A stretch of DNA of 6,676 bases, taken from Octopus sinensis (lineage: Eukaryota). The notes under the pieces are model-generated. The model made no database searches. It was not told where the DNA came from and worked only from the letters and a program-made list of their open reading frames with translations. Shown one piece after another: positions 277-6,676 of this stretch (position 1 is the stretch's first letter; each line of letters starts with the position of its first letter). The DNA lies in the NCBI RefSeq assembly GCF_006345805.1, contig NW_021829262.1:1-6676 (forward strand), read 5' to 3'. The translations under genes and the position numbers were made by a program.

Positions 277-471
277 GTTAAGTATATTGTTGGCGTCATA
301 GGAATTTAGAAACTTGGAGAGCGTGAAATGATTTTATATAGGAACGGCGGGAATGTACAGGTACATAGATGTATATATGAACGTTCGTACATATTCACAA
401 CATATTTTCTAACTGGTTTCTGTATGCCGTTTCATATTGTATTCATATATAGGCGTTATTTGTCATGAAAA

Positions 472-689
472 GGCGGCGAGCTGGCAGAAACGTTAGCACG
501 CCGGGCGAAATGCTTAGCAGTATTTCGTCTGAGTTCAAATTCCGCCGAGGTCGACTTTGCCTTTCATCCTTTCGGGGCCGATAAATTAAGTACCAGTTAC
601 GCACTGGGGTCGATATAGTCGACTTAATCCGTTTGTCTGTCCTTGTTTGTCCTCTCTGTGTTTAGCCCCTTGTGGGTAGTAAAGAAATA
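472..689 (+). mobile_element. Full-length tRNA-derived SINE with target-site duplication
   Basis: A-box-like TGGCAGAAACG (482-492) and B-box-like GAGTTCAAATTCC (531-543). Central block GTCGACTTTGCCTTTCATCCTTTCGGGGCCGATAAATTAAGTACC (550-594) resembles the Meta-SINE central domain as I recall it. Flanking direct repeats gttatttgtcatgaaaa (455-471) and gttatttgtgatgaaca (690-706) match at 15/17. A homologous copy lies at 1392-1597 on the minus strand. Confidence 0.9.
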
Positions 690-1370
690 GTTATTTGTGA
701 TGAACAGACCTTCGTAACAGTTCAGAAGAAGAATTAGCTTTAACTACGTGTTACCCCATAAAATTTGTGTCATTTTATGTTGCTTTTTATTTTGTCAACT
801 AAGGACTTTAACATATTTGAGTGTCCACCTCATTACCTTAGAGTGGAAAAAATAAGGATTGTTTTAACATATTTAATAGATTTTGCAAACATTGTTTAGT
901 CGTAATGTAATATGGCTTCCTCTGGGAAGAGTGAAGAAACGTTAGCCGCAAACGTTGTAGTAATGGATATGATCCCCACTTCGCTACGTCAACCTTACTT
1001 GAGATTTAGAAACCAATGCACGGATTTTGAAAAGATAAATAAATTAAAAAATAAAAGGTAGGAAAAAAATCATGACAGTTGAACAAGCAGACACAGTTGT
1101 GAACAGAGTCATTTACACACTTTAACATATGGAAATTTTAAATATGTATATATATATATTAAAACGTAGTGTTAGCCTTAATAACAAAACCACCGACAAC
1201 AGCCATTGCCAGCAATGCGAATCAGAGGGAAGCACTCGACATGGGTCAGATAAAGGAAAGGAAAGAGAAAAGAAAATGTGAATGTGTCACAAAAGACAGC
1301 AAAACTTCTGGGAAGATGAATTCATCAGGGAGAGCGTAAGGAGAAAAATCGGCGTATCTCTGCTTCTCAA

Positions 1371-3107: not shown

Positions 3108-3414
3108 CTGAAGAAATACCCAATTGAATGGTTTCGAATATGAGGAATATGAATTGAATTTTATTTCTATAGTTGAATTCATTGGGTATGTAAACAGCTG
3201 TGGGCAGGAATTTCTCCATTTGAATTTGAATGACTTTAGAATAAATAACATCTGTAGGTCAATTTTATCCATTTTCTACATTTTCTGATTCATAATGTTT
3301 TAAAAATTGCTATGTGTTTCGGCGATAAACTAATACGCTTGGTTTTCATTGAACGCTAGTAAAAACAGGAGAACTAGGATGCTTGCATCCCTTAAGGGAA
3401 TTTAGTTCCTTGTC

Positions 3415-3626: not shown

Positions 3627-3650
3627 GTATGTATTATGTTATATGTCTAG

Positions 3651-4040
3651 CTTGTTTTAGTCATTGGACTGCAGCCATGCCGGACCACCATCTTAAGGAG
3701 CTTAGTCGGTTAAATCGATCCTAGGACTCTTAATTAAAGCGTACTACTTATTCTTTTGGTCTATTTTGCCGAATCGCTACGTTAATGGGACGTGAACAAA
3801 CCGACTCCGGTTGTCAAGCAATTGTGGGGGACAAGCAAGCACCAAGTCAAATAAACGGACACGCACACATACAAACATAGAGGCTGCTTTTATTTTCCAT
3901 CTACCCAATCCACTCACTAGTATTTCGTCGGCTCGGGGCTATAATAGAGGACATTTCTCCAAGGTGCCACACAGTGGGACTGAACCCTAAAGCACGTAGA
4001 CGCAAAGAAAGTTTCATAACCACATAGCCATGCCTGCTCC
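3651..4040 (-). mobile_element. Full-length degenerate tRNA-derived CORE-type SINE (octopus OR2-like, from memory)
   Basis: The minus strand begins ggagcaggcatggctatgtgg. It has an A-box-like motif (plus 4020-4030), a B-box-like GGGTTCAGTCCC (plus 3976-3987), then TGTGTGGCACCTTGGAGAAATG (plus 3952-3973), similar to the MIR CORE segment TGTGTGACCTTGGGCAAGT. The body and tail match a recalled octopus SINE. Confidence 0.8.
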
Positions 4041-4047
4041 TATGTGT

Positions 4048-4285: not shown

Positions 4286-4347
4286 AATAATAATAATAAT
4301 AATAATATAATAATAATAATAATAATAAAAATAATAATAATAATAAT
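4286..4347. repeat. (AAT)n, 5' flank of the Dong-like insertion
   Basis: Direct reading; about 20 units with two interruptions. Confidence 0.95.
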
Positions 4348-4350
4348 TAT

Positions 4351-4650
4351 CTAGGAAGATCAAGAAGGGAACCGAAATTATCTGAGAATGATCCCTGGCT
4401 TACCATCCCTGCAAGAAGTGCAAAAGATTGTCTTAACTGGTACATCACACGTCATTGAGAGAGAGCATTGTCGATGTGAGAATTATTACTACCCATGTAT
4501 TTTAATTACTTAAAAAAAAAAATTGAACGAACTATTGAGTTTAGTTTAATGGCCTACCAATGTATACTATGAGTTTCTTTGCCCTAGGAGTCGGGAAGAC
4601 ATTCGGCAAGAAATGGAAGCAAATTTGAAAGAAGAAAAAAAAAAAGTAAA
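4351..4650 (+). mobile_element. 5'-truncated R4/Dong-like RLE non-LTR retrotransposon 3' end inserted in (TAA)n
   Basis: 4379-4453 translates to YLRMIPGLPSLQEVQKIVLTGTSHV. It is preceded by frameshifted LG..IKKGTE and followed by frameshifted ALSM* (stop 4477-4479). This fits the C-terminal LG..K.....IPG.PSL.E.QK..L.GT.H.LR motif of R4-clade RLE proteins. About 170 nt of UTR follows, with (AAT)n on both sides. Confidence 0.8.
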
Positions 4651-4695
4651 AATAATAATAATAATTATTATTATTATTGCTATTATTATTATTAC

Positions 4696-5440: not shown

Positions 5441-5473
5441 ATACATACATACATACATACATACATACATACA
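5441..5473. repeat. (ATAC)8, 5' flank of RLE copy 1
   Basis: Direct reading. Confidence 0.95.
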
Positions 5474-5743
5474 ACGGATGTTAACATAATGAAGATCAGT
5501 GAAAAAGAGAACACCTATGCTGAACTATTGAGAAATCTGCAGTTATTCTATCCAGATCACAAGTTCTGGTTTATACCTGTAATTATTGGAACCTTAGGAT
5601 ATGTAACACACTGCCTAAATACCAATCTTGAGAAACTGGGCTTCTCAGGATCAGAAAGGAGAAAGCTAATTCGAAGACTGCAGATCCAATACATCACTAG
5701 AACTGTAAAATTCTGTAAAACTTTCCAGAAGTTTATCATTTAG
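5474..5743 (+). pseudogene. Truncated C-terminal RLE endonuclease coding segment (includes the 84-aa ORF 5489-5743)
   Basis: TDVNIMKISEKENTYAELLRNLQLFYPDHKFWFIPVIIGTLGYVTHCLNTNLEKLGFS...CKTFQKFII*. It lacks the RPD catalytic motif, the zinc knuckle and the RT. Confidence 0.8.
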
Positions 5744-5816
5744 ATATATATATGAGCATGTTAGATATGCAACTATATATATGCATGAGAATATATACAT
5801 AAACATACACATCTGC

Positions 5817-5910
5817 ACATACATACATAAACATACATACATACATACATACATACATAATACATACATACATACATACATACATGCATGCATGCGTACA
5901 TACATACATA
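5817..5910. repeat. (TACA)n tract internal to the copy 1 3' UTR
   Basis: Direct reading; the homologous tract in copy 2 is at 6476-6557. Confidence 0.9.
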
Positions 5911-6014
5911 TACTGTTGTTGATGTTGAAATTCCAAAGAAAGGGACCTTGGATCTAGGTTAGAAACTGGTTCTTTTTCTATTGGCAAGAAATCTTGAAAT
6001 AAACTGAATAATAA

Positions 6015-6052
6015 CATGCCTACATACATAATACATACATACGTACGTACAT
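6015..6052. repeat. Degenerate (CATA)n spacer between RLE copies 1 and 2
   Basis: catgcctacatacataatacatacatacgtacgtacat. Confidence 0.85.
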
Positions 6053-6055
6053 TAT

Positions 6056-6392
6056 AGACCTGACATAATGTTTTGGAATGGAGAAGCGAAACTGTGTACA
6101 GTTGCAGAAATCAGCTGCCCAACGGATGTTAAGATAAAGCTAAAGATCAGCGAAAAAGAAAATCCCTACGCTGATCGAAGGAGAAATTTGTAGCTACTCT
6201 ATCCAGATTACAAGTTCAGGTTTCTACCTGTAATTATTGAGGTAGTTGTGATACGTAGCACATTGCCTAAGTACCAATCTTGTGAAATTAGGTTTCTCAA
6301 AATCAGAAAGAAGGTTGTTTTGAAAATTACAGATTGAATCCTTCACAGGAATTGTACAAATCTGTAAAACTTTCCAGAAGTTTATCATATAA
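6056..6392 (+). pseudogene. Disrupted RLE (PD-(D/E)xK-type) endonuclease domain
   Basis: RPDIMFWNGEAKLCTVAEISCPTDVKIKLKISEKENPYADRRRNL*LLYPDYKFRFLPVII...CKTFQKFII*. It has the RPD..E..P..EK...Y pattern of RLE retrotransposons. Stops at 6191-6193 and 6321-6323 and a +1 frameshift near 6250. Confidence 0.85.
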
Positions 6393-6471
6393 GCATACAT
6401 GAGCATGTCTAGACATGCAACTATATGCATGAGAATACATACATAAAACAAAACATACAAATCTGCACATA

Positions 6472-6475
<4 letters not shown>

Positions 6476-6505
<30 letters not shown>

Positions 6506-6557
6506 CATACACGCACACATACATACATACATACATACATACATACATACATACATA
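6476..6557. repeat. (TACA)n tract internal to the copy 2 3' UTR
   Basis: Direct reading. Confidence 0.92.
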
Positions 6558-6676
6558 AATGCCCTGTTGAATCTCTTTCTCTATTGGCAAGAAATCTTGA
6601 GATAAAACTGAATAACAACATACATTCATCTACACACACATGTCCATTTGTCTCCAAACTATAAGATTGGATGGAT

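Follow-up and report, generated by a model that had tools for sequence, protein, structure and literature searches.

The last 1.2 kb of a 6,676-nt stretch of the Octopus sinensis genome (contig NW_021829262.1; the whole stretch is hereafter called the window) hold two related sequences lying one after the other among tetranucleotide repeats of the type (TACA)n. An initial annotation, made from the letters alone, read them as the 3' ends of a retrotransposon with a restriction-like endonuclease that inserts specifically into this microsatellite. The locus thus raises the question of whether the repeat is the target of the element, a tail that the element carries with it, or simply the kind of DNA in which its copies accumulate. 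The anatomy of the two copies, the protein that the family encodes, its distribution in the octopus genome and, above all, the junctions at both ends of many copies bear on this question.

Structure of the two copies in the window

Copy A occupies window positions 5472–6014, with its start at 5472–5475 and its end (...GAATAATAA) at 6014, and copy B occupies approximately 6050–6618, starting at about 6050–6053 at the RPDI...EISCP endonuclease motif and ending (...GAATAACAA) at 6618. As the initial annotation had described, with limits that proved correct throughout, these are two homologous 3' ends in the same orientation (about 80% identity in a pairwise alignment, A1), both 5'-truncated, at different points, and both finishing in the same 3' register, with CAT... 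directly after the 3' end and no poly(A) at either. The TACA repeats that had been reported on both sides of each copy were likewise recovered with Tandem Repeats Finder, the one after 6618 in degenerate form; two more arrays (5817–5910 and 6476–6557) belong to the interior of the copies and had not been separated from the flanks. All the parts of the two copies described below lie on the + strand.

Each copy consists of four parts: the end of the ORF, a 3'UTR of about 75 nt, an internal (ACAT)n, and a terminal segment ending ...CTGAATAAYAA, which measures 60–105 nt in the two copies (alignment A1). Copy A is preceded by an (ATAC)8 microsatellite (5441–5473; Tandem Repeats Finder), the remnant of the target on its 5' side, before which the sequence is unrelated. 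Its ORF remnant (5474–5743) is open and comprises the last 89 codons, corresponding to the end of the restriction-like endonuclease domain, with a TAG stop at 5741–5743; according to translation and blastx, this peptide is 48% identical to residues 1010–1097 (the last 88) of P0160, an intact 1098-aa protein from Argonauta hians (E 8e-28). It is followed by the proximal 3'UTR (5744–5816; ...AATCTGCACAT), conserved at 87–92% in the 40 best-scoring genomic copies, and by the internal (ACAT)n (5817–5910), which is part of the element's 3'UTR and appears at the same position, with variable length, in copy B and in most genomic copies. The terminal 3' segment (5911–6014; ...CTGAATAATAA) is the true 3' end of the element, and its 40 best-scoring genomic matches show 93–95% identity.

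Between both copies, a degenerate (CATA)n at 6015–6052, detected by Tandem Repeats Finder as (TACA)n at 6021–6052, is at once the 3' flank of copy A and the 5' flank of copy B, and represents the leftover of a microsatellite that was struck twice. The ORF remnant of copy B (6053–6392) is decayed: it runs from RPDI...EISCP to a TAA stop at 6390–6392, is interrupted by stops and frameshifts, and is aligned by blastx, in two frames, to the relative P0066. The proximal 3'UTR (6393–6475), the internal (TACA)n of the element (6476–6557; also called by Tandem Repeats Finder) and a terminal 3' segment with a 42-nt internal deletion and the end ...CTGAATAACAA (6558–6618) follow in the same order as in copy A (alignment A1). 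The 3' flank of copy B (6619–6640) is degenerate, beginning CATACATTCAT.. and passing into (CA)n, with a 75% match to (ACAT)n over 20 nt. The peptides of both copies, too short for this kind of search, gave no Pfam match, and the terminal 3' segment folds no better than shuffled sequence (z −0.25).

Compared with the family majority, taken as the column majority of 29 copies, copy A has diverged by 5.9% and copy B by 13.5%. In view of this unequal divergence, the copies are separate insertions, that of copy B being the older, and not a local duplication.

Other repeats are found elsewhere in the window. The 3' fragment of a different Dong-like LINE lies at approximately 4348–4646 (within 4286–4665), and the translation of 4376–4510 (..IPGLPSLQEVQKIVLTGTSHVIER..) is 41% identical to the C-terminus of a young TAA-type family described below (pairwise E 3e-8). 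As this fragment sits between (AAT)21 and a (TAA)n run, it can be regarded as a TAA-type copy in the same window. SINE-like repeats are present at 470–690 (+), 1390–1610 (−), about 2700–2830 and about 3640–4045, the first two forming an inverted pair whose arms (556–626 and 1436–1506) are 83% complementary; ARAGORN called no tRNA gene in the whole window.

Protein and class of the element

The element was classified from the natural open pieces of the family and from intact relatives in other assemblies. One long copy, when read through, displays reverse-transcriptase motifs, a CRLC..H..C knuckle and the motif RPDI..EISCP.D.N, and the knuckle can be seen in octopus copies. The natural open pieces match the Pfam family RVT_1 and show a weak similarity to R2 proteins of the Protein Data Bank. 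With a natural ORF of 423 aa as query, a full HMMER search retrieved 1496 relatives, many of them of 1050–1230 aa, and RVT_1 was identified in five intact relatives with E values from 1e-27 to 1e-30. Downstream of the reverse transcriptase, a CCHC knuckle (C-x2-C-x8-H-x4-C) that aligns with the R2 knuckle is invariant in 54 relatives, the same 54 in which the PD motif is conserved.

The argonaut protein P0160 has R2 proteins as its best solved-structure matches (E 1e-23). The model of its residues 850–1098 (pLDDT 95) fits the knuckle and endonuclease module of R2 with TM scores of 0.65–0.76 and E 1e-10, and the next structure matches of this C-terminal model are PD-(D/E)xK nucleases. The CCHC knuckle and a PD-(D/E)xK fold matching that of R2 bear out the restriction-like endonuclease that had been proposed from the window. 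The element is a non-LTR retrotransposon (LINE) of the group with restriction-like endonucleases (CRE/R2/R4/NeSL/HERO), and its single ORF encodes a reverse transcriptase followed by a CCHC knuckle and then by a restriction-type endonuclease resembling that of R2.

At the other end of the protein, the five intact relatives gave no Pfam match to an N-terminal zinc-finger, Myb or APE domain at E values up to 0.1, and neither a zinc finger nor a Myb domain is visible in the first 200 residues of intact relatives, an absent match being weak evidence. The Dong/R4 clade is defined by the absence of an N-terminal zinc-finger or Myb DNA-binding domain, and the five intact relatives agree with this definition as far as an absent Pfam match can tell.

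The family across the octopus genome

The 2.72-Gb assembly (13,516 contigs) holds at least 3795 first-look candidates for the ORF/UTR part and at least 2640 for the terminal 3' segment, the scored samples being the best-scoring 40 matches of each search out of these thousands. Throughout the genome, the 3' end of the family is ...CTGAATAATGA followed by CATA. Coverage drops stepwise toward the 5' end among 30 loci, which is the signature of variable 5' truncation; the 3' end is fixed, and terminal repeats are absent. A full-length copy measures about 4 kb plus the internal repeats. Its 5' terminus (...CGAAGCGACAAGTCGCG), located by comparing three long copies, was found with a 199-nt probe in at least 334 candidates, and nearly all of the 40 that were scored start at probe position 1–3. 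No intact copy was found among 150 scored reverse-transcriptase matches, where the longest open frame reaches 478 aa. There is no reverse transcriptase upstream of the copy at locus L003, which is therefore truncated.

A search with L062:1500–3600 was dominated by young SINE-like repeats of 94–99% identity. Besides the array in the 3'UTR, the family has one more internal microsatellite, (TAG)n(CAG)n, which is translated as poly-Ser in the N-terminal portion of the ORF (L062:1310–1430 (−); nucleotides 3132–3374 of the L064/L067 copy); this tract is skipped or variable in many copies.

The internal repeat of the 3'UTR

An internal (ACAT)n between the 3'UTR of about 75 nt and the terminal segment is the layout of most genomic copies of the family. 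The Argonauta and P0157 relatives have short 3'UTRs that hold no internal array, and in these the ACCTTG..CCGGT core and the A-rich end of the octopus terminal segment recur. Given this homology with the ends of array-less 3'UTRs, the terminal segment is the genuine 3' end, and the (ACAT)n together with its 75-nt leader is an addition within the UTR. The idea that the terminal 105 nt constitute a separate short element lodged in the tail of the LINE was rejected for the same reason, and also because the two parts occur together in most copies.

A second, decayed octopus family of the same (ACAT)n clade was observed at L103 (G000:C1:11071200–11071900) and at L026, downstream of the internal repeat. 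This family has a short 3'UTR devoid of internal repeat and ends ...GATGAGA followed by CACACAGACATACATACATACACA. At L026, its copy is inserted inside the internal (ACAT)n of the first family, and insertion into the internal array helps to explain nested or tandem arrays such as that of the window.

Sister lineages and their repeats

A tree built from the octopus ORF and 56 full-length relatives places the octopus family with P0160, P0003 and P0152/P0157 in a five-row clade with a support of 100, whose members come from the octopus, the argonaut and three further contigs. A 3' end could be read in four members, each of which terminates in (CATA)n, the contigs of P0160 (with two adjacent copies), P0003 and P0157 ending ...A followed by CATACATA.... 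Outside this clade, five of six contigs (P0029, P0019, P0164, P0094, and P0065) have (TAA)n flanks, several of them on both sides, and the sixth, that of P0118 (L077), has an 8-mer repeat, (CTCTTACT)n, at its end and not a microsatellite with units of 3–4 nt. An ORF encoding an OTU protease domain lies upstream in the P0118 contig.

The same octopus genome hosts a young Dong-type family with dozens of copies and stop-free frames of 700–1226 aa, exemplified by the loci G000:C7:627800–633000 (L079 and L080) and G000:C3:148116500–148117600 (L081). In both copies examined, its 3' end is ...ACTACTGAA (...CTGAA) followed by (TAA)n, and the C7 copy, the one checked on the 5' side, has a long (TAA)n there as well. 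Since this co-resident sister family sits in (TAA)n while the clade of the octopus family finishes in (CATA)n, the type of repeat tracks the lineage and not the genome; the tree implies a minimum of two target changes among ten labelled rows. The lineage forms a distinct clade beside the (TAA)n-flanked Dong-type lineages, and from the architecture of the protein and these sisters we infer that it is Dong-like.

The ACAT-type end (..GAAATAAACTGAATAATGA followed by CATA) and the TAA-type end (..AAAATAAAACTACTGAA followed by TAATAA) share AAATAAA..CTGAATAAT (positions ~1580–1601 of L032–L060, compared with L079/L081). This may be a chance resemblance in A-rich sequence, or the fossil of a (TAA) tail that persisted after a change of target.

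Insertion junctions

Junctions were counted at 60 loci and compared with 1180 control positions, a flank being scored as repeat when it matched (ACAT)n at 80% or more over 20 nt. Nearly all of 59 3' ends begin with CATA, and 33 of the 59 run into (CATA)n, compared with 1.2% of the controls, none of them (0/59) being in the antisense direction; the median length of these short runs is 3 units. On the other side, 35 of 51 truncated copies have (ACAT)n at their 5' junction (4% of controls scored alike; 2/51 antisense), spread over many truncation points and with a median upstream run of 7 units. Of these 35 upstream repeats, only 6 can be assigned to a further family copy, as its 3' flank or its internal array, while the other 29 are preceded by non-family DNA, often the tail of a SINE. 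Moreover, the full-length 5' terminus adjoins (ACAT)n in 15 of 20 sampled copies (0/20 antisense), often with 2–6 extra bases at the junction. Fisher tests against the 1180 controls yielded p values from 1e-16 to 1e-37. The 5' junctions that fall below the threshold (16/51 in truncated and 5/20 in full-length copies) include several that retain short ACATA-like stretches; the others may be the outcome of later rearrangements, as we assume.

A repeat located before the precise 5' terminus cannot have been placed there by an element-encoded tail, and therefore indicates insertion within (ACAT)n. Judging from its junctions, the family inserts into simple repeats of the type (ACAT)n, which is equivalent to (TACA)n, and it does so in one orientation, with the sense strand of the element on the ACAT strand. 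This agrees with the microsatellite-specific family envisaged in the initial annotation, which had named diverse 3' flanks and 5' junctions outside repeats as the pattern that would speak against targeting; instead, the 3' flanks are not diverse genome-wide, and (ACAT)n in one orientation precedes truncated as well as full-length 5' ends. Some of the CATA at the 3' junctions could still be carried by the RNA, because the 3' run is short (a median of 3 units versus 7 at the 5' side).

The length difference between the flanks, with the repeat longer upstream than downstream of the insertions across the 60 loci, has several possible causes: a nick near the downstream edge of the repeat, target repeats that are lost on insertion, or binding that has to take place upstream. 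In the 5' flanks of L008, L013, L049, L052, and L084, a SINE tail (..GGCCGCAGTCAAATGACTGAAACAAGTAAAAG..) is often followed by the (TA)n or (TACA)n that hosts the LINE. The tails of these SINEs may seed landing pads, or the SINE may share the machinery of the LINE.

Proposed mechanism of insertion and alternative explanations

The window copies are very probably two independent, dead, 5'-truncated insertions of a high-copy LINE of a Dong-like lineage that targets (ACAT)n. Copy B inserted first, and copy A landed afterwards in the repeat remaining upstream of it. By analogy with R2, the protein would recognise the repeat and nick the (TATG)n strand after G, and the 3'-OH at the nick would serve as the primer for reverse transcription, which would begin at the conserved RNA 3' end. 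A nick after G would produce the constant junction ...GA followed by CATA, although a (CAUA)n tail of the RNA annealing in register would produce the same junction. Reverse transcription would often stop early, leading to the variable 5' truncation, and the 5' end would then be joined back to the repeat, with some additional or microhomologous bases at the junction.

The two origins of the constant junction lead to a variant of this model in which the element does target the repeat, but selects it chiefly through the pairing of a (CAUA)n-ended RNA with the nicked (TATG)n strand, and not through sequence-specific cleavage by the protein. We consider this variant unlikely, although several observations are in line with it: the constant register and the presence, at almost all 3' junctions, of about two or more CATA units; the lack of a detectable N-terminal DNA-binding domain in intact relatives; the close similarity in layout between ACAT-type and TAA-type proteins; and the resemblance of the 3' end ...CTGAATAATGA to the TAA-type end ...CTGAA followed by TAATAA. 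On the other hand, R2 structures reveal that the protein itself positions and cuts the target, a parallel that on the octopus side consists of fold similarity only, and the sequence data do not separate RNA pairing from cleavage by the protein as the mechanism. In the same vein, it can be suggested, with considerable doubt, that ACAT-type and TAA-type sisters of the same layout in one genome represent a natural retargeting of a LINE through an altered RNA end and not an altered DNA-binding domain.

A passive association without any targeting, in which the element itself seeds (ACAT)n from its internal repeat and its tail or survives better in repeat-rich DNA of low recombination, is very improbable. 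The expandable (ACAT)n inside the element would provide such seeding, and passive accumulation near CA repeats has been proposed for Drosophila Waldo-A/B (PMC3812793). However, the repeat adjoins the exact full-length 5' terminus and many different truncation points, where no seeding sequence of the element is present, and its orientation is one-sided (antisense 0/59, 2/51, and 0/20). The co-resident sister family in (TAA)n also runs counter to it, as the type of repeat tracks the lineage.

Slightly less credible still is that the CATA repeat is nothing but a tail carried by the element, with near-random integration and with the 5' repeats deriving from the tails of older copies upstream. Such tails have parallels in the TAA tail of the I factor and the repeats of UnaL2, and every 3' end of the octopus family does show at least 1–2 CATA units in a fixed register, in runs with a median of 3 units. 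Tandem arrays, found in the window and at L008, L038/L039, L046, and L054, also fit this reading. Nevertheless, (ACAT)n is found at 35 of 51 truncated and 15 of 20 full-length 5' junctions, and the 5' runs exceed the 3' runs in length. With only 6 of the 35 repeat-type flanks coming from another copy of the family, and 29 following non-family sequence, for example unique DNA or SINE tails, the repeat cannot be only an element-encoded tail.

Finally, a local tandem duplication of one insertion together with its repeat, which would account for the shared orientation and internal layout of copies A and B, deserves hardly any credence in view of their different 5' truncation points (5472 versus 6050), their unequal divergence from the family majority (5.9% versus 13.5%), and their mutual identity of about 80%, compared with 88–92% between copy A and copies elsewhere.

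Comparison with known systems

Target specificity is the rule among restriction-type LINEs, some of which are known to use microsatellites, so that insertion of the octopus family into (ACAT)n is unsurprising in kind. Its interest lies in the pair of sister lineages that share one genome and the same protein layout, one of them old and (ACAT)n-specific and the other (TAA)n-specific with long open frames. R2 and other restriction-type LINEs are under study as tools for inserting genes at specific sites, and to our knowledge R2 is the only one for which the reading of the target has been worked out; the ACAT/TAA pair offers a clean natural contrast for mapping target determinants. For cephalopod genomics, the family accounts for many (ACAT)n arrays interrupted by nested or tandem 'Dong-R4' fragments. 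In Octopus vulgaris, 'Dong-R4' LINEs have been reported to be abundant, with recent activity (PMC13282606, PMC8967140).

The closest known system is Dong, a member of the R4 clade characterized in Bombyx mori, Anopheles gambiae, and the snail Biomphalaria glabrata, which has a single ORF with a reverse transcriptase, a CCHC knuckle and a C-terminal restriction-like endonuclease, lacks poly(A) and inserts into a microsatellite, as the octopus family does. The target of Dong is (TAA)n, including that of the snail element, and both the relatives of the octopus family at 26–33% protein identity and the young co-resident family flanked by (TAA)n conform to this type (PMC3812793). Unlike Dong, the octopus family and its clade sit in (ACAT)n instead of (TAA)n and form a clade of their own (support 100), and the octopus family carries an additional internal (ACAT)n in its 3'UTR. 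Microsatellite-specific restriction-type LINEs that use a different repeat from the octopus family include Togen, which is placed near NeSL/HERO and targets (TG)n, and some HERO families (PMC4640811).

R2 provides the best solved-structure matches for both the reverse transcriptase and the knuckle–endonuclease module, and target-primed reverse transcription is presumably common to both elements. Contrary to the octopus lineage, in which neither feature is seen, R2 has N-terminal zinc-finger and Myb domains and a single site in 28S rDNA; the flanks of the octopus family are microsatellites.

Regarding the target itself, the initial annotation knew of no element with (TACA)n specificity. Full-text searches of the literature likewise found no restriction-type element specific for (ACAT)n; for LINEs as a whole the statement does not hold, as the APE-type Waldo elements of the R1 clade (WaldoAg1/2 and WaldoFs1) target (ACAY)n, which includes ACAT (PMC3812793). 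The (ACAT)n of the octopus family falls within this (ACAY)n definition. However, Waldo bears an N-terminal APE endonuclease, whereas the octopus lineage shows no APE match and has a restriction-type endonuclease at its C-terminus, and the target common to both is convergent. Because (ACAY)n targeting had already been described for Waldo, the novelty of the octopus family is confined to the restriction-type, Dong-like elements, among which it represents a new target in a known kind of element.
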